From Guillardia theta CCMP2712 (taxonomy: Eukaryota > Protista > Cryptophyta), in the NCBI RefSeq assembly GCF_000315625.1, contig NW_005434414.1, positions 1-40,031 on the forward strand: DNA of 40,031 nt, written 5' to 3'. The notes below the pieces were generated by a model that did not search any database, had not been told where the DNA came from, and worked only from the letters and a program-made list of their open reading frames with translations. Positions 1-40,031 of this stretch are shown piece by piece. The first letter of the stretch is position 1, and the number at the start of each line of letters is the position of its first letter. The position numbers were made by a program, and so were the translations under genes.

Positions 1-711
1 GTAGTCCCATTTCTTCAAGCGATCGAATCCTGATGTAGGATTTTCTTCTCCTGCAATGATGAATTCCATTGGGCTATCGTAGATTGCTTTCTCCCATCCC
101 GAGGCGACTGCTTGTTTTCCTTGCTTTGCCATTTCCTTTGCCTCTTGAATGTGTCTCTGAGATTCTTTTGCTAGTTGGAGTCGGATCCTGATTCCCCTCC
201 CTTCGAGTTTCTTCATGCAAGTGAGTAACCGATCATGTAAGTCCTCCAGCAGTTCGTCTTCGTATCGCATGGTATCCATTCGCAACGTATTTGTCATAAA
301 GCGGTGGAAACGTGTGGACTGGTACATTATTGTGACTTGATTTCCCCTTTTGATCTGTATTCCTTCCTCAAGGACATGTTGCAGAAGTAAGCCAATTGCG
401 ATTGTGTTCGCTCGAATGATGCTGCACTTCCCATTGATTTTCATCCCTCCTCCTGACGTCATCTCTTGTTGTTGGAGAACATATCCTATTCGCATGGATC
501 TGTTTTTTCTGCCCTGCATGATGTCTCCTTCAATAGCTGCTGTGAAATGCCTTCCGCCTTGATGATTGCTGCGCGGCTGGATCTGATCCCTTCGTCTGTT
601 ACACAGCTCCTCATACGTTGGGAGGATGTTGTCCTGAAGTTGGTCTCGTAAGTATGTTGGGAGTTTGTGCCCAACTAGTATCCCAACTCTTCTACAGTTT
701 TTGTCAAGCAC
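1..711 (-). pseudogene. third segment of the polyprotein, with a degenerate RNase H-like fold; open to the window edge
   Basis: Manual translation: ..HFTAAIEGDIMQGRKNRSMRIGYVL..GGGMKINGKCSIIRANTIAIGLLLQHV..VTIMYQS..IRLQLAKESQRHIQEAKEMAKQG.. No stop from 711 to 1. Confidence 0.65.
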
Positions 712-1904
712 CTATTCCCTGTCCTCCAGAAGTTTGCTGCATAAGCTATTTGAGCGCCTTTCGGGATCCGGCTGATAATTTCAAAACCTTCTGGTATCTC
801 ATCAATGTTATTCTTCCATCCTATCAGAATGACATGTATTGTATCCAGGATTTGTTCACGAAATCTCTTTTGTTTGTCCATCCAAACCACCACTCGTTGC
901 AGTTCCCTTGCTCTCTTCTTGTCCAGAGCCTGGGGATGTGTGTGTAGGGTAGGCCAGTTACGAAATGTACTGATGTCGCATTCTGTAATCTCCGCTAAAT
1001 GTTGTAAAAACTCGTATGCCAATGGTTGTGTTTTTTCTTGGCGAACCTCTGATACTACCTCCTCGAGTTGTTGCCACCATGCTGTAGCTTCTGTTTCGCC
1101 GTCGTCCAATGCATTAACTATTTCCAGCAGCAGATGGATGCTTTGATTGCAGTCTCTTCGGTTATTACCGTCCTCTTCCCTTGTTGCAGATGCGAAGGGA
1201 GCCGAGTCCAGCGACGCTTCCAACCATTCTATTGGTGGATCCACGGTCTTGCTTTCTTCAATTTGAGATCGCTCAAAGATGGCTATGTTCCCTTGAACTT
1301 TGAAAGGTATGTTGCTTGTAGTGTAACAGAATCTTTCTTGCTGATTCCCTCCTTCATCATAACAGGTGGGGTCATGTTGGAGCCACCGCCTCAAAATTAC
1401 CCGGGTGCAAGCCTTCGTATTCGTTTCCTCTCTCCCTTGGTCCGGTCTGGCTAGTTTCTTGTGTGGCTGAAGTTCATGTGGGCTAGCCTCCCTTTTTCCT
1501 TTCCTTCTCTTGTTTGGGGGCTTCCCCTCCTCCCTGGCTGGCCTTCTTCTCTTCCCTGTTCCTGCCTGCTCAAGTCCGAGTTTTGCCCAGATGACATTCG
1601 CTTGTAGATATTGTGCGAGGATTTCTTCTGCTTGTTCCCTTTGCTTTGGGAATGGCCAGAGTCGCACGGGCAGGTGCAGGGAGATGCCCTCGGTATCTGG
1701 GACGGGTAAAATACTTGTCATGGAGTGGAAGCCTACTTGGGGCAGTAGTCTCCATGCCTTTGCAAAACTCTCCCAGCCTTGCCGAGCAGGAGATGTAGGT
1801 AGGGAGTTTTCTCCGGACGGCAGGGAGTTTTCTTCTGAGAGCATCTTGTCCTCCAGGTCGTGTAAGATGGCTATTGTCCCCGGTTTCATCTTGCTTTCAA
1901 TCAT
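675..1904 (-). pseudogene. continuation of the RT polyprotein after a frameshift near 1900-1925; unknown domain with basic NLS-like cluster
   Basis: Overlaps the RT ORF stop (ATGATTGA). The frame is open upstream of its ATG (..TISWEMIESK). Contains GKRRRPAREEGKPPNKRRKGKRE. Confidence 0.7.
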
Positions 1905-4419
1905 TTCCCAACTGATGGTGGTCTGCGCTCCAGATTGCGAGTCTTTCCGGTCCTCTCATCTCTTCGTTCTCTTTGAGTCTGCCCGATCTGATTTCTCGTT
2001 GTAACTGGTTTATTGTTTGACACCCCCATTGGTTGCACCATGATGTTAGTTTGTGGATCAGACTGCTTTTGATATCATCATCCACCCTGCATTTCTTATT
2101 CGTTTCTTTCTCTAGATACCGAATCGCCGCCCTTCCCAAGATGGGTGCTGGATGGGGGAGTTGGAGGCCTCCTCTGTCCCAAGGTAGGTGAAAGATAGCG
2201 TTGCTTGTACTCTTGCTCAATCCCATAGCTCTTTTGAATGCTCTGGTCCAGAGGGTATCTAAGGTTTGTAAGTCTGACCAAGACCAGCTCACCAGTACCG
2301 CCGAGTATCTAAAGATATTGACGATGCCTACCTTCACCAGGTAATATTTTTGGGCTGCCGAGTAAGCAGATGATTCAATCAGCTTTGTCAGTTCTTTTGT
2401 CTTCTCCAAGATGTGTTCTTTCTCTCCCCACGTGAAGGGGCAGGTGTGCGCCTTGTTGCCTCTTCCTCCTGGTCTCCACAAGCTGATCCGGATCCCTAGA
2501 TATTTGAACCATTTTGTCGGTGGTAGGTTCACAAACTCCTTGTCAAAGAACTTGATGTTTTGTGTTCCTTGGATCTCCCTCTTTAGCCGATAATCAAAGC
2601 TGGTGATTTCAGATTTCTTCGTGTTCAGTTCTAATCCACTCCATCGACAGAATCGTTCTACCACTTGAACAAGCGTTTTCATCTCTCTCACTGAATGTGC
2701 TATCAGGACAAGGTCGTCTGCAAATGACAGATTATTAGGGTGTTGAGTTGCAATCTCGTTTTGTTGATCAAGTTGTCTGGACAAGATGCTGAGCAGAAGA
2801 TTTGTTTTTGGTGGACTCGCGGGGCTGCCTTGAGGTAATCCCCGGAGGAGCGGGATTGCTGCTGTATCAAACCTCTCAGTCTGGATTTGCAGAGCTATGC
2901 CTTGACTGCAGCTGACTGCGACGTCGACATCGCGCTGGTGGAATCCATATACCTCCATGATTTTTGCGATGGATTCAACCGCGACGTTATTGAAGAAGTT
3001 GGCAAAGTCGAGGTATAACAGTATAATGTTGTTTTGACTGCTCTGGGCCTCCTCGATGATGTTAAGTAGTCTATGACCTTGACGGATCGTCCCGCCCTCG
3101 GGTCGGAAACCCTCTTGGTTATCTGTTAACAGCTTGTGCCTCTCAGCTGCTTTTGCCAGTCTGTGTGCTATCACCGCTTGGAAGATTCGCGTCACCGACG
3201 AGAGGATACATATAGGACGCATATTTTCCAGAACATGACAGAGCTCGTTTTTTGGAAGGAGTCTGACTCGTGCTAGCATGTTCAACAACGTTTTGTCTCC
3301 TGTCAACGCTCTACTGATCACTTTTCCTATCTCCTCCTTTGCGCTGTCAGGTAAAGCTTTCAGGATCTCGTTTGAGATCAAATCCATGCCTGCTGCCTTG
3401 CGATTTGATACTTTTTGAATCCAAATCTGAATTTCTCCTGGCTCCAGGGGAAAAGCAATTTCTATTTCCCTGGTCGGGTGTTGATCAATGTTCGCGGGAG
3501 AGTTGAATTCCGGTGGTTGGACGGAGGTGAATGATTGACACTGTTTGCAGAAGAAGAGGATCGTCGTTTCTTCGTTCTTCTGACCTTTGTCATATAGCGG
3601 GATCAATCGTCCTCGTGTTTGACACTCCGCCTTTGCGCAGGTTCCATTCGTCGTGCAGCCGTTGACTGCGAAGAAGGTTGCCGTGTGGGTTTCATCTTCG
3701 AGTTCGCTAGCCAATCTCATAGGGAGAAATTGCTCGATGTTCTTGTATCCTTCTAGGCGCCACCCTCCTGGTTGTGGGAGCAGTTCCCGAATGATTTGTA
3801 CAATCAAATGTGCTGGCGCCACGGTGAGGGAGAGCTTCTTTGATGTTTGATTTCCCGCCCCGAGGACCTCAACGTGCAGTAAGGTTTGATGTTTTGCATT
3901 CCAAAAAGTTTTGCTTGATTCTTTGGAGCTGTTTTGCAGGAATGCTTCCATCAGCGGATCCAGGTCCTGTAAATACTCTAGCTCTGACCGCTGCAGCGCT
4001 GGTTGGAGATCGCTCCATGAGGTGAGTTCAATTGTATTTGGGTGGCATTTCTCTGGCAGTTGGCTACTCATTGGGGCTTTGGGCTTATAGTCTGATTTCT
4101 TCCCCATTGCATTCTGGGACTCTTTACTCCCTATCGTGCCCAGTCGTCGTCGGCGTTCCTCGCAAGCTTTCAGGAAGGTTTGTTGGTCCTGTTCGGTGCA
4201 GATCTCCTTGAATTTGATCATAGTCTCTCTTAGTTCGGCGTTGATACTCGACTCCCTGTGTGCACGATCAATATAGTCTGTGATTTCTGATGCGCTTCTC
4301 AGATCCTTGCGAAGTTGCTTAATCTTCCTTTTCAGGTCCATTTGAATCTTCGATGAGTATCGCTTCCCACCTGAGGTTCGTAGGGGGATTTCCTTAATGG
4401 GAAGGGCAGTTGTTATCAA
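1897..4419 (-). CDS. non-LTR reverse transcriptase ORF, N-terminally truncated, no APE endonuclease visible
   Basis: Motifs KAAGMDLISNEILK, NMRPICILS, NQEGFRP, LYLDFANFF, GLPQGSPASP, LSFADDLVL, KYLGI, LPWDRGGLQL. First ATG is at 4341; the frame is open up to the TAG of the telomeric repeat. Confidence 0.95.
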   Translation of the reverse strand: MITTALPIKEIPLRTSGGKRYSSKIQMDLKRKIKQLRKDLRSASEITDYIDRAHRESSINAELRETMIKFKEICTEQDQQTFLKACEERRRRLGTIGSKESQNAMGKKSDYKPKAPMSSQLPEKCHPNTIELTSWSDLQPALQRSELEYLQDLDPLMEAFLQNSSKESSKTFWNAKHQTLLHVEVLGAGNQTSKKLSLTVAPAHLIVQIIRELLPQPGGWRLEGYKNIEQFLPMRLASELEDETHTATFFAVNGCTTNGTCAKAECQTRGRLIPLYDKGQKNEETTILFFCKQCQSFTSVQPPEFNSPANIDQHPTREIEIAFPLEPGEIQIWIQKVSNRKAAGMDLISNEILKALPDSAKEEIGKVISRALTGDKTLLNMLARVRLLPKNELCHVLENMRPICILSSVTRIFQAVIAHRLAKAAERHKLLTDNQEGFRPEGGTIRQGHRLLNIIEEAQSSQNNIILLYLDFANFFNNVAVESIAKIMEVYGFHQRDVDVAVSCSQGIALQIQTERFDTAAIPLLRGLPQGSPASPPKTNLLLSILSRQLDQQNEIATQHPNNLSFADDLVLIAHSVREMKTLVQVVERFCRWSGLELNTKKSEITSFDYRLKREIQGTQNIKFFDKEFVNLPPTKWFKYLGIRISLWRPGGRGNKAHTCPFTWGEKEHILEKTKELTKLIESSAYSAAQKYYLVKVGIVNIFRYSAVLVSWSWSDLQTLDTLWTRAFKRAMGLSKSTSNAIFHLPWDRGGLQLPHPAPILGRAAIRYLEKETNKKCRVDDDIKSSLIHKLTSWCNQWGCQTINQLQREIRSGRLKENEEMRGPERLAIWSADHHQLGND

Positions 4420-4430
4420 ATTGATAATGT

Positions 4431-4440
4431 CTAAACCCTA
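4431..4440 (-). repeat. telomeric repeat remnant (TAGGGTTTAG)
   Basis: ctaaacccta lies between the RT unit and the tail of the ORF1 unit. Confidence 0.8.
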
Positions 4441-4611
4441 TTATTATTATGTGAGTTTATTAGAATGCTAGAATGTTGCTCGGCCTCGTTGTGGGCTTTT
4501 GCAATTTGATCCTAGTCTAAAGAGGCGCGCGAGCACTGGGAGTACACGGCCTACAATGCGAACCCTGCTTCTGAGGCGTCTTTCTACTTTCTACTTCTGC
4601 TGTCTTCTCTT

Positions 4612-4826
4612 GGCTTCCTCAGCCTCAGTCAGGAGAGTTGCCTCTCCTCACCTTGGCCTTCGGTCGCCACCTACTCTACCTCCATTCAGCTTCCTCACCC
4701 TCAGTCAGGAGAGTTGCCTCTCCTCACCTTGGCCTTCGGACGCCACCTACTCCTCCTCCATTCAGCTTCCTCAGCCTCAGTCAGGAGAGTTGCCTCTCCT
4801 CACCTTGGCCTTCGGTCGCCTCCTAC
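4612..4826. repeat. 76-bp tandem repeat, ~3 copies, in the 3' UTR of the ORF1 unit
   Basis: tcagtcaggagagttgcctctcctcaccttggccttcgg starts at 4625, 4701 and 4777. Confidence 0.9.
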
Positions 4827-4851
4827 CTTCTCTCCTTACCTTGAGCTCAGC

Positions 4852-7020
4852 TCAAGCTCGGTACGGGCTCGCCCCGTCTTCTTCCTCGCCCTCGCCTTGC
4901 TCTTCCTCCATGTCTTCCTCTTCTTCGTCATCTTCCCTCATCTCCACCCGCAGTCGGTCCTTCTTGTCCACCTTCAGCGAGCAGGCCAGCACATGCATCT
5001 CTGCGAATTTACTCAGTGCTATGAACAGGAAGCTAAGAGATCGACGCTCTATGTCGTCGCTCTCCGCCTCCTGCTCAAGCTCAGCAGCTGCCGTTGCCCG
5101 TGGCGAGAACGCGCTGCCCCTCCTTGCCTTCTTGCTCTCTCCTTGCACGCGAGTCCAGCGCTTGCTCTGCAGCCACTTCCCCAGCTTCTCCTTGAGAACG
5201 TTGCGTCCCACTCCCTGCTCCTCTGGCGTCTTCGCCCACTCTCCCAGCGACATGAACTCCAGGCTCCCCGGAGAGTAGAAGGTGTCGTGGAGGTTGCCAA
5301 CAGCCTTGTCCAGGACCAGCTTGATCGGCTCGCTCGTCCCCGCCTCGTTCAAAGAAGCTGCATCTTCGATGACTGCTGACAGCTCGCTGACAAGCTGCAT
5401 GTCCTCTTGGCTTGACGGAGATGCTGCCTCCATTGTGATCCTCTCCAGGTCTGTAAACTCCAGCCACTCTCCCTCGCTTTCCTCCTGTCGCTGCGCTGCG
5501 TCGCTGGTGCCCCGCTGACCAGCCGCCTCAGGCTCCTTGTCGAAGCCGACTGCTTCGAGCTTGGTGGCTGCGCCTTCGAGATAGAAGGGCAGCTCCTTCA
5601 TCATGCATCGAGCATCCTCCGTGGAGCCGAGGAGGATGCATAGCTTGGACCCGTTCCAGGACTTGGTGTTCAAATCCTCCTCCATGTCGATGCCTTCAAC
5701 TTTGATCTCGAGCCTGTTAGCGATCTCCAACAGGACTCTCTTGACTCTTGCGATGGACGTGTTGCCGCCGTTGCACAGCCCCTCCATCTCCTTCCTCGTG
5801 AAGCGACCAGATGCCGCCGTCGACTTGATGATGATCTTGATCTCCTTGCCGTCCTTGCCGCCTGCCTTCTTCTGCAGTCTTGATGCCTTCTTCAACTTAT
5901 TTCTGGACACAAAGCGATCGGCTGTCAACTCGACTGCGAGCGCCTCTCTGATCTTCGGGTCCTCGCTGAACAGAGTCAGGTGTACTCCCTCCATCGCTTC
6001 GCTCTCTCGGAAAGCTCGAAATGCTGTATCATTCGCCTCTGGGGAGCTCGAGGAGACGATCCACTCCACCTCCCTCTGTCTCCAGATGACGTTGGCCCCT
6101 ACAGCGACGAAGCCTTTCTGACCTAAGCCTTTGTGGACTTGCTGTCCTGGCGCCCCAGCGACCAGCATGCCTGCCAGCGGCTGGAGTTGGACCGCTGCAA
6201 GGGACTGGCGCAGCAGCTGATAGCGATAGACGGCAGCTATCTCAGCCGTTGTCATGCCGCCCAAGGTTAACAGGTGGGTCAGCTCTGCCAAGCTGCCCCC
6301 TTTGCCCCAGGGTCCTCTCTTGGCTCGAATCTTGAAAGATCGATCGTGCACGATGCTCACATGTACAGCTGTGAACTTGCGACCATAGATCGCGAAGTCC
6401 TCTCTTCCCTGCCAGAGCTTCTCCGCTTGTGCATTGCGGAGGAAGGAAACAGTCACCGGGATCTCCTCAGCACTCGCTATCTCGGGTCTATACGGAGCCT
6501 TCCACATGATTGCTTTACTCTCTTGCACTGAGTCTACGATCAGTCCGATCTCTTCGAATTTCTTCTTCAGCTTCTCTTCATGGTTGACATACACCGAGGA
6601 GATGCCCAGGAGAGTCATGGAGATGAAGGAAGTCACCTCGTTGCCTGCTGAGGCGGTGTATGTCTCGACCTTCTCCTTCTTGGCTTCTTCAATCTGCTTC
6701 ATAAACCATTCTCTGGATGCGTCACTCCATCCAGTCATTGCTTCTTGTAGAAGCTCACGTCGTGCCTGCTGACATGTCGAGCGGATGGCTTCTGCGATAG
6801 CGTCGGGGGTGCATCCCTCCACAGCCTTGCAAGCCTGGGCTGTCCTGCTGTTAGGATAACGCTTCGCGAAGCTCTTCACCCTCTCGACCAGATCAGCTTC
6901 GAGGACAGAGGCATCCACAAGTCCGCTCTGCGTGTATTGGCATGATCTCTGATACAGCAGGTTGCGAACACTCTCATCATACTGAAGAACCATACTTAGA
7001 AAGCTATTTGAAGTATACAA
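4852..7020 (-). CDS. ORF1/gag-like protein with RRM-like folds and acidic C-terminus (frame open upstream to ~7107)
   Basis: Intact 722-aa ORF. ISMTLLGIS-EEKLKKKFEEIG-VDSVQ-VTVSF-AQAEKLWQ-IYGRKFTA fits the RRM beta-alpha-beta-beta-alpha-beta pattern. A second copy lies at 7921-8560. Confidence 0.7.
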   Translation of the reverse strand: MYTSNSFLSMVLQYDESVRNLLYQRSCQYTQSGLVDASVLEADLVERVKSFAKRYPNSRTAQACKAVEGCTPDAIAEAIRSTCQQARRELLQEAMTGWSDASREWFMKQIEEAKKEKVETYTASAGNEVTSFISMTLLGISSVYVNHEEKLKKKFEEIGLIVDSVQESKAIMWKAPYRPEIASAEEIPVTVSFLRNAQAEKLWQGREDFAIYGRKFTAVHVSIVHDRSFKIRAKRGPWGKGGSLAELTHLLTLGGMTTAEIAAVYRYQLLRQSLAAVQLQPLAGMLVAGAPGQQVHKGLGQKGFVAVGANVIWRQREVEWIVSSSSPEANDTAFRAFRESEAMEGVHLTLFSEDPKIREALAVELTADRFVSRNKLKKASRLQKKAGGKDGKEIKIIIKSTAASGRFTRKEMEGLCNGGNTSIARVKRVLLEIANRLEIKVEGIDMEEDLNTKSWNGSKLCILLGSTEDARCMMKELPFYLEGAATKLEAVGFDKEPEAAGQRGTSDAAQRQEESEGEWLEFTDLERITMEAASPSSQEDMQLVSELSAVIEDAASLNEAGTSEPIKLVLDKAVGNLHDTFYSPGSLEFMSLGEWAKTPEEQGVGRNVLKEKLGKWLQSKRWTRVQGESKKARRGSAFSPRATAAAELEQEAESDDIERRSLSFLFIALSKFAEMHVLACSLKVDKKDRLRVEMREDDEEEEDMEEEQGEGEEEDGASPYRA

Positions 7021-7107
7021 ACCTCTCGCTTGCAGCTTCCTTGGCGCCCTGGCAGCTTCCCCTACACCACGCGTGCAGCCATGGTGACCACGCGTGCAGC
7101 CATGGTG

Positions 7108-7158
7108 CTAAACCCTAAACCCTAAACCCTAAACCCTAAACCCTAAACCCTAAACCCT
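7108..7158 (-). repeat. telomeric (TTTAGGG)7 tract
   Basis: Perfect (aaaccct)n. Confidence 0.97.
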
Positions 7159-7371
7159 GAGCTGCGCCTGCCTCCTTGATGCTAGGCTTGTTTTCCTTCC
7201 CTGCCGCCTGTGCTCCATATGTGGCTTGCCCCTGTGCCGCGCCTGCCCCCTCACCTGCCCCCATCGGACTAGGTCGACTCGCTTCCCCTTCTTGCCGTCC
7301 ATAGCATGTGTTGCACCTCCATCAGTTGCTTGATTGCTGCTGTCTTGATGCTTTCCCATTCCGTGTCTTCC
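7159..7371 (-). mobile_element. fragment bounded by telomeric tracts on both sides, no tail
   Basis: 213 bp between two tracts; origin unknown, probably an element fragment. Confidence 0.4.
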
Positions 7372-7399
7372 AACCCTAAACCCTAAACCCTAAACCCTA
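7372..7399 (-). repeat. telomeric (TTTAGGG)4 tract
   Basis: aaccctaaaccctaaaccctaaacccta. Confidence 0.95.
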
Positions 7400-7778
7400 G
7401 TAGTAGTAGTAGTTGAGTTTATTAGAATGCTAGGTAGGTTGCATGGCTTGTTATCACCTTGCTCTATTCTAGTCTAACAGGGATCTCGTGACCTGGCAGT
7501 TCGGCCCGACTTGGCTGGCCCCTATGGCAGCCGTGCTTCTGCTCTGCTCCCTCCTCTGATATACTTCAGTGGTCTTCCCCGGCCCCAGCCAGTGGAGTTT
7601 CCTCCGCCGGCCTTGGCCTGGGTCGTCCGTGCTTTACTTGTGTTGCTTCCTCGGCTCCGACACACCTTGGCGGTCTCGGCCGGCCTTCGGCCAGTGAGTG
7701 GATGATGGATGAGGTGGCAGGTGGGTTGTGGATGGGTCCCTGGGACTCACGTCCCTTCCCCCGGGCCTCGGTCCGGAC
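7400..7778 (-). mobile_element. 5'-truncated 3' end of a related element with (CTA)n tail
   Basis: tagtagtagtagtag-ttgagtttattagaatgctag..ctagtctaa is homologous to 4441-4520. Confidence 0.8.
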
Positions 7779-7806
7779 AACCCTAAACCCTAAACCCTAA
7801 ACCCTA
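7779..7806 (-). repeat. telomeric (TTTAGGG)4 tract
   Basis: aaccctaaaccctaaaccctaaacccta. Confidence 0.95.
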
Positions 7807-7889
7807 TTATTATTATTATTATTTGAGTTTATTAGACTCTTAGTCGAGAATTTCATAGCTAAGAACTATTGCTCTTTGCTCATCTCTCG
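7807..7889 (-). mobile_element. very short 3' end of a third element variant with (TAA)n tail
   Basis: (tat)6-ttgagtttattaga is shared with the other two termini, then the sequence diverges. Confidence 0.75.
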
Positions 7890-7920
7890 CCTAACCCTAA
7901 ACCCTAAACCCCAAACCCTA
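7890..7920 (-). repeat. degenerate telomeric tract with TTAGGG and TTTGGGG variants
   Basis: cctaaccctaaaccctaaaccccaaacccta. Confidence 0.9.
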
Positions 7921-8560
7921 GTCCGATCTCTTCGAATTTCTTCTTCAACTTCTCTTCATGGTCGACATACACCGAGGAGATGCCCAGGAGAGTCATGGAG
8001 ATGAAGGAAGTCACCTCGTTGCCTGCTGAGGCGGTGTATGTCTCGACCTTGGCCTCCTCCATCTGCTGCATAAACCACTCTCTGGATGCGCCACTCCATC
8101 CAGTCATTGCTTCTTGGCGTCGGGGGTGCATCCCTCCACAGCCTTGCAAGCCTGGGCTGTCCTACTGTTAGGATAACGCTTCGCGAAGCTCTTCACCCTC
8201 TCGACCAGATCAGCTTCGAGGACCGAGGCATCCACAAGCTCGCCCTGTGCGTGTATTGGCATGATCTACGATACAGCAGGTTGCGAACACTCTCATCATA
8301 CTGAAGAACCATACTTAGAAAGCTGTTTGTTGAACTATACCAAACCCTTGCTCGCAGCTTCCTTCGCGCCCTGGCGGCTTCCCCTACACCTGGCGCGCAG
8401 CCATGTGCCCGAAATACCCGGCGCTGCAACCCTAAGGCCCGCCAAGGTAACAGTGCAGCAGGCAAGGACCTGGATGTCGCAGTAGAAGTTGTGGGTTCTG
8501 GTTGATGAAGCGATTCCGAGGGAGGAGAAGAAAGAATTCTCCGTAATGCGGGTTTTCATT
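7921..8560 (-). pseudogene. decayed, 3'-truncated copy of the ORF1 N-terminus
   Basis: Highly similar to 6543-7085 but with frameshifts and deletions (about 52 bp and 9 bp). It extends further 5', with a possible ATG at 8559. Confidence 0.88.
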
Positions 8561-11008: not shown

Positions 11009-14000
11009 ATGCATCGGAGGGGTGAGTGACGAAGAGGAGGAGGAAGGAGAGGAGGTGGAGAAAGTCAAGAGAGAGAGAGAGGAGGAGAGAGGAGAGAGGA
11101 GAGAGGAGAGGGAGAGAGGAGAGGGAGAGAGAGAGAGAGGAGGAGGAGGAGGAGAGAGAGAGGGAGACAAGAGAGAGAGAGAGGAGGAGGAGGAGGGAGA
11201 GGAGGAGGAGGGAGAGAAGGAGGAGGGAGAGAAGGAAGAGGAGGGGGTGTGGGAGGGAGGAGAGGGAGACGAGGGAGAGGGAGACGAGGGCGATCACGGC
11301 TGTGAGGATGAGCACTATGACGATGAGTGATATGAGAGCAATGGAGGAGGAGGATGAGAGGGGAAGAGATAAGAAACAGGGGGTGAAGCAAGAGTTCGCT
11401 TGTGGACTAATTGTTCAGATGGATCAAGCACTTGATAAGCATGTGCTTGTGCTTGATGAGTCTGGTAGACTCAAAGCAAAAGAGCTTTGCGGATCTCGGC
11501 TATGAAGGAGTTGATCTGTCCAACCAGGGAAGGTAAACTGCTTCAGAAGATCAGTGTACCCATGCATGATCCTGCTGCAGGTTTGACGAAGCACTCATGC
11601 TCTTCTTAGAGATGGAACGCATGCAGCCACTGGATGCAGAGGTCAGTGAAGGTTGTGAGATAAATGAGAGGACAGTGAAGGTTGTGAGATAAATGAGAGG
11701 ACAGTGGAGGATACGAGTGGGGCTAGTAGGATAGTAGAGGATACGAGTGGGGCTAGTAGGATAGTAGAGGATACGAGTGGGGCTAGTAGGATAGTAGAGG
11801 ATACGAGTGGGGCTAGTAGGATAGCGGAGGATACGAGTGGGGCTAGTAGGATAGTAGAGGATACGAGTGGGGCTAGTAGGATAGTAGAGGATACGAGTGG
11901 GGCTAGTAGGATAGTAGAGGATACGAGTGGGGCTAGTAGGATAGCGGAGGATACGAGTGGGGCTAGTAGGATAGCGGAGGATACGAGTGGGGCTAGTAGG
12001 ATAGCGGAGGATATTAACTTGGGGTCAGAACCTTGTAAACATCGCGATCTGCCTGGAGAATCTCAACCGGCTGGATGAAGTGGAAAGATACTTGCAGAAG
12101 TGATGGATGCCGTCCTCCACCTGCTCCTGCTCCCTTGACTGCTTCCCAGGGCTACCAAAATCGAGCCGAAGCGCGAAGACGCCTGGAGCATGCTGGGGCA
12201 AGTGTTTGTCAGGAGAGGGCAGGCAAGGAGCTTTGAGGGGCATGGCATGCAGACTGACGGCTAGGATGCAAGATCGACTCTGCTCTGGTAGCCTACAGCA
12301 AGGCTATCAAGTTGCACCCCAAGGCAGACATGCTTTACTTGTAAGAGGGAAGGTTGGAGGAAGAGAGATGCTCTTGGGAAGCGAAGAAGAGCAAACGTGG
12401 GAGGATGGGAGAAAGAAGATGAGACAATAGGATGAGACAATAGAAGAGAGAGATCATGGAAGAAAATCGAAGGTCGGAGGCTAACTAGCTAAAATGACTT
12501 GGATATCTACAGTGCGCGTGGCAATGCTCATCAAGCAAGGGGAGATCACTACAGCGCTTCTGCGTATGTTGCGGGCTGCTCTGATCCCTGCCTTGACTCG
12601 CTTCCGGCAGAGATTTCTTGCAGGCGACCAAGATTCAAGACTCCAACTATCAGGTGCTTGGTACAGTAGCACTTGTGTTGACGGAGGCAGCTATGAGGAG
12701 GAGGAAGAGCAAGAGGAGAAGAAGGAGGAGGAGAAGGAGGAGAGCCTGAGTCTCTTATCTCGTTCCCTGCAGGCGTGGAACAACCTTGGCAGCGCGTACA
12801 TGAGTTTATCCCAGAACGAGGAGGCGATCCAAGCTTTGCGGAAGACGCTGACGTTCATCCCAACCCATCCTATCCCTCTCACAAACCTCGTCATCACTGA
12901 GAACAGAGTCTGCGAGTGGAGCCGCAAGTACAAGCATAACAAGTGAGATGATACCTTAGGCTTTGATCTGCTCGAAGTGTTTGCGATGTGCTAGAAGATG
13001 AGTTGTGAGGCTGGGATAATCTTCAGAACGTCATCTCATATTGTTTCTCCTCAGGCTTCTCCGGAAAGCTCTCCATGAGCAGCTGGCTCAGCGACGCTCT
13101 TTGGTTGTTCCCTTCCATGCCTTGTGAGCTCTTCCTCCTCTCGCGTACTCCAGCTGACATGGTGCTGCAGCGAGTTCAATTTCAGCTCAGACGAGCACAA
13201 GAGGAACGCTCAGATGTGGTCGAGGACCGTGGAAGAAAAAGTAGAGCAGAAGCAAGTCCAAGTGAGGCCGTTGACTTGCAACAGGTTGCATACCTCAACC
13301 GCTTTGAACCGGGAGGTTCGAAACTGGCAGGGAAAGGTAGCAGATTGAGAATAGGTTACTTGTCGGGATCCGGTGAGCCGCTCAGTCAAAACCCGGCATC
13401 AATGCTTTCCTTTTTGAACTTGTCTTCCCTCTACTTGTTTCTTATGCCTTTGCACGGCTTATCTTGTTCTGAATCTTTTCTCTCCTCTTTCTCCTTAGGC
13501 CTCTTCTCTTCCTGTTTCTCTACCTTCATCTCCTTGAGCTTGACTTGACTTCTTTAGCTTGACTTGACTTCTTGGGCTTGAGTTGACTTTTCCTCCGCCC
13601 AGGGTTTCACAACTCCACCACCACCGCTCGGAGCATGAGGAGTCAATTCTCAATGCACAATCGGTAGGAGGAGCCGCCGATAATAAAGTCGATTGAGAGG
13701 AGTGCAGCATGTCGGTAGACGTCTACTGCTACGCTGCTCAGGGCGATGATGGTTCGCCTGTTCGCGCTGCGATCAAGCGAGGATGCGACAAGTAGGCGGA
13801 GAGAGCAACAGGTCCTTGATTCCTGACTGAATCCTTCCATGCAGGTTCGTGGAGCTTCAGGGGAAGAGCCATCAAATGGTTCACATTTTTCTCCTCCCCT
13901 CTCTTTCCTCGCGTTCATCTTTTCTACCCTGCCTGCCCACCATACCATCCAACCCACTTCTTGCTTTCTCTTTATGTCATTCTTATCTTTACTCCTTTTC

Positions 14001-26880: not shown

Positions 26881-27323
26881 GAAGAAGAAGAAGACCTCTC
26901 TGCAGCCTATTACGCAAACGCAATCAATCACATGGTAAAAGGTCTGTGTTTGTGATCTGACATTGACTTTCTTTTCATCAGTTTGCATTCTTGCAAACTC
27001 TGCTGCAAGAGCAAGAAGATAACTTGTTGGTGTTGGAGGATGATGTTGTTGTCTGTGAGTTGATAGGTGTAGATGTTCGATGATACCTGACAGGACGTGT
27101 TTGCAGCACCTCACATACAACACGATCATCAGCTGCATTCAATCCTGGAAGAAATATTTGAAGAGATGCCCCAGGTAACAGGCTTCGCATGACTCCGTGG
27201 ACTTGATGGGACTTGAATGATTACTAATCATCGTCATCATCAAAAACAACTTTGTTAACATCATCATCATCATCATCACCACCACCACCACCACCACCAC
27301 CACCACAACAACAACAACAACCA

Positions 27324-27693
27324 NNNNNNNNNNNNNNNNNNNNNNNNNNNNNNNNNNNNNNNNNNNNNNNNNNNNNNNNNNNNNNNNNNNNNNNNNNNNN
27401 NNNNNNNNNNNNNNNNNNNNNNNNNNNNNNNNNNNNNNNNNNNNNNNNNNNNNNNNNNNNNNNNNNNNNNNNNNNNNNNNNNNNNNNNNNNNNNNNNNNN
27501 NNNNNNNNNNNNNNNNNNNNNNNNNNNNNNNNNNNNNNNNNNNNNNNNNNNNNNNNNNNNNNNNNNNNNNNNNNNNNNNNNNNNNNNNNNNNNNNNNNNN
27601 NNNNNNNNNNNNNNNNNNNNNNNNNNNNNNNNNNNNNNNNNNNNNNNNNNNNNNNNNNNNNNNNNNNNNNNNNNNNNNNNNNNNNNNNNNNNN
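27324..27693. other. assembly gap (~370 N)
   Basis: N run flanked by a (cat)(cac)(caa) microsatellite and poly-C. Confidence 0.99.
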
Positions 27694-28343
27694 CCCCCCC
27701 CCCCCCCCCCCCTTCCCTCCCTCCTCCCTCCCCTCGAACGCCTCTCTGCAGGACTGATCGTCTGGCAGCTTCCTGCCTGGTGCAGCTTAGATTGGATGAT
27801 GCATGCGGCGAAATATGCTAACGTTGACGAGTCGAGTCAAACCAAGGTGAGAGAGAAGGAGGGAGGAGGTGCAGGAAGGTGGTGTAGCTCAAACAATCTG
27901 TAAAATTCTGCCAGGTGTACTTCATCGATCCTCCCGTATTTGTTGAAGGAAGTAAGATTGGGATGATGAAGACAACGATAGAAACGTGACGTGCTCTTTG
28001 AACTGACAATGTACATACTGTAAACTTGATAGAAACACAGAATCTTTTGTTTCAAGATGATGTAACTTTACATGTCGACTGGAGAAAGTTGCTGGAGGTC
28101 CTAAATCGTTGTCATCATCATCATCTTCGTCGTCGTCAATGACGTTGTCTCCATCATCATCATCATCATTATCATCATCATCATCATCATCATCATCACC
28201 TCAATCATCATCTCAATCATCACCCTCAGTCAAAACGTCCACGTATGACATTCATTGTCTTTGCAGTTCTCTTCATTCTTGTCTTATCATTGTAACTAGA
28301 CGCATGTTAAAATCTCGACGACAAGAATCCTCGTCCTTCATCT

Positions 28344-37256: not shown

Positions 37257-40031
<2,775 letters not shown>

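Follow-up and report, generated by a model that had tools for sequence, protein, structure and literature searches.

In Guillardia theta CCMP2712, a cryptophyte rather than a green alga, the telomerase-type repeats at the ends of the chromosomes have, in our reading, been invaded repeatedly by a community of repeat-specific non-LTR retrotransposons, in which elements that encode only ORF1 (families H and H2) would be mobilized in trans by autonomous families (A and B). We assign this reading a probability of about 0.85. It starts from an array at the beginning of contig C260, which opens the window, i.e., the whole stretch of 40,031 nucleotides that was analysed. Positions 1-8440 consist of six retroelement segments arranged head-to-tail, with telomeric-repeat tracts between them that read CCCTAAA on the plus strand, where a two-unit pattern was matched 11 times against 0.01 expected. 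The initial annotation had described six co-oriented minus-strand segments, and all six are borne out among the following features:

1-4431, minus strand: family-A (subfamily A') Dualen-type copy, 5'-truncated, with two frameshifts, running off the contig start (RVT_1, tblastn).
4431-4440, minus strand: 10-bp telomeric-repeat remnant, from the H tail to the truncated 5' end of the A copy (direct reading).
4441-7107, minus strand: H, full-length ORF1-only non-autonomous element (sequence, ORF, genome copies).
4452-4520, minus strand: predicted 3'-terminal hairpin of H (conserved blocks, minimum-free-energy folds, pair probabilities).
7108-7157, minus strand: telomeric-repeat tract of about seven units (direct reading, pattern count).
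7158-7373, minus strand: family-A fragment, truncated on either side, with the end of ORF2 and the beginning of the 3' UTR (matches on C90, C245, and C64 to the 3' regions of A).
7374-7398, minus strand: telomeric-repeat tract (direct reading, pattern count).
7399-7778, minus strand: H2 copy, 5'-truncated, 3' UTR only, terminus CTAATAAACTCAA(CTA)4 (same as the H2 3' end on C64).
7779-7803, minus strand: telomeric-repeat tract (direct reading, pattern count).
7804-7883, minus strand: family-A copy with extreme 5' truncation (last 80 nt), terminus CTAATAAACTCAAA(TAA)5 (sequence).
7884-7920, minus strand: telomeric-repeat tract with one variant unit (direct reading, pattern count).
7921-~8420, minus strand: older H copy, ~92% identical, unit positions 25-566 only (5' part), 3'-truncated (blastn of the H unit).

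Two copies within the window are 3'-truncated and capped by repeats. Telomeric repeats sit directly on the 3' break of the older H copy at 7921-8420, which fits terminal erosion followed by healing by telomerase, and the family-A fragment at 7158-7373 breaks off distally at an internal CAGGG, again with telomeric repeats as its cap. The short A copy at 7804-7883 is identical to the terminus of a complete A 3' UTR on C64.

As had been proposed from the sequence, the unit at 4441-7107 encodes only ORF1 and carries a tail of its own. Its single ORF (722 aa, 4852-7020, minus strand) is preceded by a short 5' leader, in which a 21-nt unit is duplicated (7066-7107), and is followed by a 3' UTR of ~410 nt containing 76-bp tandem repeats (~4600-4830). 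The unit ends in AATAAACTCACA(TAA)3 joined to TAGGG, with the (TAA)3 tail at 4441-4449 and CTAATAAACTCACA as the terminal module. In the genome, at least 62 full-length copies with 96-99% identity were scored from 671 first-look candidates; because the assembly is an older one, built of scaffolds with gaps, all copy numbers given here are lower bounds. Sixty of the 62 copies are free of stops. The copies lie close to contig ends (≤5 kb in 43/62 and ≤30 kb in 60/62), and in 60/62 the 3' end points towards the contig or chromosome end.

The boundaries of H are precise. All copies begin at a common start position, preceded by a variable count of 19-22-bp repeats, and 26 of the 28 3' junctions among those listed join CTAATAAACTCACA(TAA)n straight to the repeat at its TA|GGG phase. 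What varies is the length of the tail, the length of the telomeric tract, and the neighbour downstream, which may be a long telomeric tract, another H copy, the 5' end of an A or B element, or a member of a further family; H-H tandem arrays also occur. Of the ORFs examined, 30/30 are intact, with indel lengths in multiples of three, and pN/pS is 0.13 in this set, which was drawn from the best-scoring copies and is biased towards intact ones; the value fits selection on active source RNAs. Independent retroposition of the ORF1 unit and telomere targeting, both claimed by the initial annotation, are upheld by these copies. At the level of sequence, H is confirmed as a real, separate, independently retroposed, and highly amplified ORF1-only element, which presumably gives rise to transcripts of its own with defined ends and may still be transposing.

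Families A and B are each ~10 kb long, with an ORF1 of ~720 aa and an ORF2 of ~2,500 aa in which a putative C48-like peptidase, an APE, an RT, a CCHC knuckle, and an R2-like restriction-like endonuclease (RLE) follow one another; by this order of domains, the layout is the Dualen architecture. Full-length B elements on C64, C15, and C176 have an ORF1 of 716 aa, one stop, and then an ORF2 of ~2,502 aa, the junction being UAA plus 9 nt followed by the in-frame AUG that opens ORF2. A full-length A element on C270 likewise has its own ORF1. Among the sampled loci there was no family-A copy with a fully intact ORF2, the copies examined being 5'-truncated or frameshifted.

The individual domains are supported to different degrees. 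The APE (Exo_endo_phos), N-terminal to the RT, scored 31.9 bits in family B against a cut-off of 24.5, and 20.2 bits, under the cut-off, in family A; RVT_1 was detected in ORF2 as well. The motifs CCPxCx8Hx4C and IPDG-x13-E are invariant in 7/7 copies of families A, A2, and B. A low-confidence model of the ORF2 C-terminus (pLDDT 49) resembles the C-terminal region of R2Tg and R2Bm (VIA-align Z of 12.1 and 11.3, next ≤7.9), and Foldseek matched the same model to R2 proteins with E=2e-4. A PDB sequence search of the C-terminus gave no match, and the ESM Atlas features returned nothing. The combination of a CCHC knuckle with a predicted restriction-like (PD-(D/E)xK) endonuclease in one ORF, which marks Dualen/RandI elements, is thereby indicated by motifs and model. 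Peptidase_C48 stayed under its cut-off (E=0.0017, 18.7 bits against 20.7), with H..W and NCG motifs visible by eye. Between RT and RLE, Pfam gave no RNase H match, and RNase_H is carried by the closest clusters of the ESM Atlas (score 0.91). No SET domain was seen.

The RT segment of the window (RVT_1, E=7e-30) belongs with family A. It aligned by tblastn to aa 668-1510, 1510-1923, and 1916-2157 of the A ORF2, in a reference frame lacking about the first 166 residues of that protein, and the three parts lie in three different frames, with frameshifts near 1912-1925 and 684-708. The RT had been taken for a separate, 5'-truncated unit beyond a telomeric remnant, and so it is: the copy starts at about aa 668 and the remnant spans 10 bp. 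Because it is 5'-truncated, this copy lacks an ORF1, a C48-like region, and an APE of its own, and it runs out at the start of the contig before CCHC/RLE is reached. Copies that are 96-99% identical over the alignable parts were found on C486, C141, C214, C154, and C28. At three loci of the same subfamily (C141, C214, and C181) the ORF1-to-RT spacing is constant, with ORF1 ~2,370 nt upstream of the point at which the window copy starts; the copies on C141 and C214 were judged to be full-length from their coordinates.

The ORF1 proteins tie these elements together. The ORF1 of H can be aligned along its whole length with those of A, B, and H2, with an identity of 30% to B (E=1e-69), ~30% to A, and 58-61% to H2. 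H is the most abundant of the four families; besides its copies there are ~20 copies of H2, ~9 full-length B ORF1s, and ~19 A ORF1s; nine copies of the B ORF1 are 99-100% identical. A profile search of 1.84 billion representatives yielded only 56 relatives of ORF1, and the named relatives, from a separate search, belong to Guillardia and Hanusia. P0026 turned out to be a gene-model variant of H2. Dozens of GUITHDRAFT_* 'hypothetical proteins' cluster at G. theta scaffold ends because of these elements. As to function, the ORF1 had initially been called RRM-like. A search of Pfam with the H protein gave no match, but its AF2 model, of low confidence (pLDDT 56), alternates strand and helix in the best segment (up to ~83), and Foldseek placed the multi-RRM proteins Prp24, NONO/SFPQ, and U2AF65 at the top (E=7e-5, TM only ~0.1-0.2). 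The model thus lends weak support to the RRM assignment, in that the ORF1 of H and H2 looks like a multi-RRM-type RNA-binding protein.

A 3' signal common to the ORF1 unit and the RT elements had been postulated, and a candidate is found in the last 19-24 nt, the only part over which the UTRs of H match those of A, B, and H2, and in a predicted hairpin. The tails are (TAA)2-7 in H (n=34), (CTA)4-7 in H2 (n=6), (TAA)5-6 in A (n=3), and (CTA)4 in B (n=2), and 42 of 45 tail-repeat junctions are at the TA|GGG phase. H has the CTCA..(TAA)n end in common with A, whereas the 17 nt upstream of it (TCTAGCATTCTAATAAA) are common to B and H2 instead, and the assignment of a partner to H by its terminus is ambiguous. 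In the predicted hairpin, a UCUAA box immediately preceding the tail would pair with a UUAGA box that lies ~70 nt upstream and so close the stem; these boxes are conserved in 4/4 families, the four lineages on which the hairpin evidence rests. The closing stem is present in all four minimum-free-energy folds, with pair probabilities of 0.6-1.0, and 11-14% of interior shuffles still form it. When the four 3' ends were aligned with MAFFT, RNAalifold gave no consensus structure, the stem being seen in single-sequence folds only.

Several other explanations may be considered for this arrangement. The window itself, with an RT segment lacking ORF1 and an ORF1 unit lacking RT, suggests a truly bipartite system of mutually dependent halves, and the initial annotation had accordingly placed ORF1 and RT on two separate RNAs. 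That claim does not hold, since the RT of the window is merely truncated, and full-length B (C64, C15, and C176) and A (C270) elements, as well as the window's own subfamily at C141, C214, and C181, have ORF1 upstream of ORF2. Full-length copies with ORF1 refute the bipartite reading, which we consider very improbable, and the system is instead one of autonomous elements with ORF1-only dependants. Still less credible is a single composite element, in which ORF1 and RT would be joined by a telomere-like internal spacer. Only the 10-bp remnant separates the two in the window, but the window junction recurs in 0/27 other H 3' junctions, where the neighbours are diverse and H-H tandem arrays exist, and the composite reading is thereby refuted.

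H might also be a family of subtelomeric host genes, or a duplicated segment that recombination has carried from one chromosome end to another. Subtelomeres often exchange sequence, H copies are 98% identical, and their retrotransposition is deduced from the genome sequence. Recombination would, however, have to account for exact common 5' and 3' boundaries in spite of variable tails, tracts, and neighbours, for the telomeric repeats that bound every H copy individually, and for 5'-truncated sister-family copies in the same array. With the homology of the ORF1 to that of bona fide LINEs and the low pN/pS in addition, a host origin is quite improbable. Somewhat better placed, yet unlikely, is the idea that H and H2 are not long-standing lineages but arose recently from the present A or B by internal deletion, as HAL1 did from L1. 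The shared layout of 5' short tandem repeats, ORF1, 3' hairpin, and trinucleotide tail would agree with it, as would the homology of the ORF1s. The divergence of the H ORF1 from A and B and its greater closeness to H2 argue against it, as does the restriction of UTR similarity to the terminal nucleotides; four ORF1 searches of the own genome, in which only the best candidates were scored, returned no autonomous element with an H-like ORF1, which weighs little. Attachment to chromosome ends in the manner of Penelope-like elements of the Athena type was excluded by the orientation, by the LINE-type RVT_1 with an APE, and by the lack of reverse-complement repeats at the 3' ends.

Under the preferred reading, i.e., repeated invasion of telomerase-type repeats with H and H2 mobilized in trans, positions 1-8440 would be the inner part of a chromosome-end array. 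All elements would have their sense strand on the G-rich strand and their 3' end towards the chromosome terminus. An endonuclease encoded by the elements may nick the C-rich strand inside a repeat; the C-strand 3' end so exposed, at ...CCC or ...CCCTA, would then act as primer for reverse transcription, with the trinucleotide-repeat tail of the RNA as template. In the case of H and H2, each RNA would be coated in cis by the ORF1 protein that it encodes and copied in trans by the ORF2 protein of an autonomous family, which would recognize the tail type and a terminal module of ~20-24 nt (CTAATAAA...) that closes the 3' hairpin; the tails would pair H with A through (TAA)n and H2 with B through (CTA)n. 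Telomerase would still be active and would re-cap eroded elements. We infer the nick site, the endonuclease responsible (APE or RLE), and mobilization in trans. A more speculative extension, which we regard as rather unlikely, takes H and H2 for independent partner lineages of long standing, in co-evolution with particular autonomous Dualen families via a tail/hairpin code, which would form, together with telomerase, a functional part of the chromosome cap. If this were true, it would be a second, convergent HeT-A/TART-like mutualism in a telomerase-positive protist and not simple parasitism of the repeats.

Telomere-specialized retrotransposons are classic selfish elements that inhabit, and even replace, an essential chromosome structure, and the well-studied cases are few: Drosophila, the silkworm, and a few fungi. 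The G. theta system would add a deeply separate eukaryotic lineage, the cryptophytes; another LINE group, the dual-endonuclease Dualen type; and an ORF1-only dependant that is abundant, is under purifying selection, and coexists with active telomerase. The conserved terminal hairpin and the tails that differ between families, (TAA)n versus (CTA)n, offer a testable hypothesis for how a LINE RT chooses its RNA in trans. With two endonucleases per protein and a defined 7-bp repeat as target, the G. theta elements may also lend themselves to determining the strand that each nuclease cuts.

We found no publication that describes this system. Cryptophyte Dualen elements (Dualen-1_GCr as well as Dualen-5_CCu) have the same ORF2 domain set as A and B, and the parts of that report consulted do not mention telomere targeting, a separate ORF1, or an ORF1-only partner (Lescot et al. 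2016, PMC5029228). A 2025 survey described LINE/Dualen as expanded in all cryptophytes but G. theta (PMC12747079). The cryptophyte elements and Chlamydomonas Dualen/RandI have very long ORFs, as do the G. theta families, with C48 peptidase, APE, RT, (RNase H), CCHC, and RLE in an order that the G. theta ORF2, with its putative C48-like region, would follow.

ORF1-only derivatives of LINEs and telomeric pairs of autonomous and non-autonomous elements are both known outside Drosophila, the former as mammalian HAL1 and the latter as MoTeR1/2. HAL1 (half-L1) resembles H in being a non-autonomous LINE that has retained an ORF1 under selection while borrowing the ORF2 protein, but its copies are dispersed and not telomeric, and contemporary L1 gives rise to it repeatedly, whereas a deep divergence separates the ORF1s of H and H2 from all autonomous ORF1s of the G. 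theta genome. MoTeR1/MoTeR2 of Magnaporthe and FoTeR of Fusarium also insert into telomeric repeats and have variable short 5' repeats, and MoTeR1 and MoTeR2 are an autonomous and a non-autonomous member with common termini; they differ in being CRE-like with an RLE only, and we know of no conserved ORF1 in MoTeR2 that is homologous to that of its partner.

The closest systems are SART/TRAS and HeT-A/TART. SART1 and TRAS1 of Bombyx mori (R1 clade) depend on an endonuclease, insert in one orientation and at a fixed phase of the repeat, as do the G. theta elements (42/45 tails at TA|GGG), and leave the host its canonical repeats; as in G. theta, the sense strand of SART1 coincides with the G-rich one. 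They belong to another clade, with an APE only and poly(A) tails in place of the RLE, the C48-like domain, and the (TAA)n/(CTA)n tails, and to our knowledge no ORF1-only partner family has been described for them. HeT-A, TART, and TAHRE of Drosophila (Jockey clade) combine autonomous elements with ORF1-only dependants, and the likeness to G. theta extends to head-to-tail terminal arrays of several coexisting families whose commonest member, HeT-A, encodes only Gag/ORF1 and obtains RT from partners with both ORFs. In Drosophila, however, the 3' ends face the centromere and the elements replace the telomerase repeats, whereas in G. theta canonical repeats are still being added and flank every element. 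The 3' ends of the G. theta elements face the terminus, so that an endonuclease nick is needed instead of priming from the chromosome end, and their RT partners are elements of Dualen architecture with two endonucleases and with (TAA)n/(CTA)n tails in place of oligo(A).

On the + strand, positions 1-8440 of the window carry CCCTAAA tracts (11 matches to the two-unit pattern, against 0.01 by chance), which set apart six minus-strand segments. The window spans the initial 40 kb of contig C260 (46,147 bp). As C-rich repeats occupy the top strand where this contig starts, the left side is the terminal one on the chromosome, and the 3' end of each of the six segments is directed towards it. The initial annotation had read the anatomy of the array correctly, and the feature as a whole is real and robust. 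Protein names in the ORF1 family assign the host genome to Guillardia theta CCMP2712, which belongs to the cryptophytes rather than the green algae. Subtelomeric host sequence in the window includes a minisatellite (30 bp x 10.5, 11698-12013), a 1-kb stretch of 31% GC (27001-28000) and a perfect (AGC)70 microsatellite (38393-38604).

The ORF1-only element H (window 4441-7107, minus strand) contains a single ORF of 722 amino acids, for which no match was found in Pfam. A search of its own genome gave 671 first-look candidates, from which at least 62 full-length copies were scored at 96-99% identity; 60 of these 62 have stop-free ORFs. Comparison of the unit with 30 loci by blastn showed that its boundaries are common to the copies, which start at about unit position 18-48, after a variable count of 19-22-bp tandem repeats, and mostly extend to position 2667. 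H-H tandem arrays are common among these loci. At 26 of the 28 H 3' junctions listed, CTAATAAACTCACA(TAA)n passes directly onto the telomeric repeat, the other two having extra or variant bases; the (TAA)n tail comprises 2-7 units, and the telomeric tract after it has from two units to upwards of 12. What lies downstream varies (further repeats, another H, the 5' ends of the RT-encoding families A or B, and others), and the junction between H and the RT segment in the window recurs at none of the 27 other H 3' junctions. Therefore, a single ORF1-RT element, of which H would be one half and whose copies would all share the same ORF1-tail-RT junction, is excluded. The 3' UTR of H holds about three 76-bp tandem repeats (window 4600-4830), the count of which differs among aligned copies.

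The contig end faced by the 3' end of H is at most 5 kb away in 43 of the 62 copies and at most 30 kb away in 60. Two copies, C46:485186-487351 (+) and C72:438898-441069 (-), are located away from the faced end, one lying 96 kb into its contig, the other pointing away from a contig end close by; interstitial arrays or misjoined scaffolds could account for them. All of 30 full-length H ORFs are intact, with indels that are all multiples of three, and their pooled pairwise pN/pS is 0.13, in a set of best-scoring copies that is hence biased to intact ones. The low ratio and the intact ORFs indicate that most differences arose in lineages needing ORF1 function.

The RT segment of the window (1-4431, minus strand; family A) has an RVT_1 domain but no domains upstream of it, and the segment carries two frameshifts. 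By identity to this RT, the genome contains family A (73-100%), family B (about 50%) and additional families at about 58-62% and 44-47%; as the latter have matches on C82, C65, C39, C329, C30 and C7, the telomeric community is larger than A and B, whose ORF2 proteins share 45% identity across 2,134 aa. Full-length copies of B (C64, C15 and C176; about 10.3 kb, with telomeric tracts at both bounds) and of A (C270) have their own ORF1, and ORF1 copies number about 19 of A type and nine of B type, the latter at 99-100% identity. In the window's RT subfamily, the loci on C141, C214 and C181 each have an ORF1 further upstream, about 2,370 nt before the position at which the window copy starts. The RT elements are thus not ORF1-less, and the proposal of a split of ORF1 and RT onto separate units was wrong; the window copy has simply lost about 4.7 kb from its 5' end. 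Another 5'-truncated family-A copy, on C90 (L033 6282-9716), abuts a Ty3/gypsy pol ORF (RNase H-integrase) with no telomeric tract between. The full-length organization and ORF2 features are as follows:

Full-length family B, order: ORF1 of 716 aa, then UAA, 9 nt and an in-frame AUG, then an ORF2 frame that stays open for about 2,502 aa
APE, family B ORF2: Pfam 31.9 bits, above the cut-off of 24.5
C48 peptidase, ORF2: E=0.0017, slightly under the cut-off
CCHC and RLE (restriction-like endonuclease) motifs, ORF2: CCPxCx8Hx4C and IPDG-x13-E, both without variation across seven copies from A, A2 and B
RLE fold, ORF2 C-terminus: low-confidence model (pLDDT 49), closest to the C-terminal region of R2Tg (Z 12.1) and of R2Bm (Z 11.3)

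Generic PD-(D/E)xK nucleases match the RLE model at Z 7.9 or less. The presence of APE and RLE within one ORF is the hallmark of Dualen, and the description that suits the system best is one of telomeric-repeat-specific LINEs of Dualen type, accompanied by abundant dependants that carry only ORF1. Cryptophyte Dualen elements with this set of domains, C48 (here a candidate) among them, have been published (PMC5029228). The spacing of the family B frames (L035 3486-3503; C64:10527-10542) suggests termination-reinitiation or readthrough.

The ORF1 of H aligns end to end with those of A and B (about 30% identity, E=1e-69). A second ORF1-only family, H2 (about 20 copies), is 58-61% identical to H, and at C321, C210 and C223, for example, the space is too small for ORF2. 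The initial description of ORF1 as RRM-like finds weak support in its model: the best-modelled segment alternates strand and helix and the top Foldseek matches are multi-RRM proteins (E=7e-5), but with low TM and a pLDDT of 56 overall. This very narrow family has just 56 representatives in a set of 1.84 billion proteins; a Hanusia phi transcriptome contains a 37% identical homologue, and a fragment with 98% identity is present in a different MMETSP transcriptome. On C245 (42669-43719; L032 4670-5720), the H 5' end (unit 40-520, including the first 144 codons of ORF1) is fused to the N-terminal region of a family-A ORF2, a chimera that could have arisen when reverse transcription switched template from A RNA to H RNA, or by recombination.

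The UTRs of H match those of A, B and H2 only in the last 19-24 nt. All four families keep two boxes: UUAGA, which is about 70 nt upstream, and UCUAA, which is right before the tail. Pairing of the two closes a terminal hairpin in each single-sequence fold, with an interior unalignable among families. This hairpin is a candidate RT-recognition element, predicted from four lineages only and with a stem kept in 11-14% of interior shuffles. The tail is (TAA)n in H and A and (CTA)n in H2 and B, and 42 of 45 tails join the repeat in the same TA|GGG phase. One family-A subfamily (86-90% identical; L045 4380-4573, C2:1296379-1296572), without the CTAATAAA module or a trinucleotide tail, has its 3' terminus, ..CCCAACTAA, joined directly to the repeat. 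At the 5' end, each family has family-specific short tandem repeats (H, 19-22 bp, L001-L030; A, 26 bp, L043 2750-2880; B, about 20 bp, L034, C64:12700-12757) that vary in number among near-identical copies and may be promoter monomers or stuttering at the RNA 5' end.

More than half of H's words are present in several small same-species assemblies, which are probably RNA although none is recorded as such, suggesting that H is transcribed. About 60% of H 31-mers also occur in freshwater, lake and runoff metagenomes (runs X2-X14); G. theta being a marine species, this is unexpected, and close relatives or contamination are possible sources.

Because the sense strand of the elements is the G-rich strand, first-strand synthesis would have to be primed by a C-rich-strand 3'-OH, which is present only after an endonucleolytic nick; we infer insertion by nick-primed reverse transcription. 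Erosion of elements whose 3' ends point to the terminus, followed by telomerase healing, would leave 3' truncations capped by repeats. Two window segments, an H 5' part (7921-8420) and an A fragment (7158-7373), are 3'-truncated with repeats directly on the break, as expected of this process, which argues that telomerase is active and that elements are sometimes at the very end.

A 2025 survey found LINE/Dualen expansion in all cryptophytes but G. theta (PMC12747079), and our literature search found no publication on telomere-targeted Dualen elements, or ORF1-only partners, in cryptophytes. The orientation of the elements is like that of SART1, whereas HeT-A/TART and Athena have the opposite orientation and prime from the chromosome end, unlike the nick proposed here.
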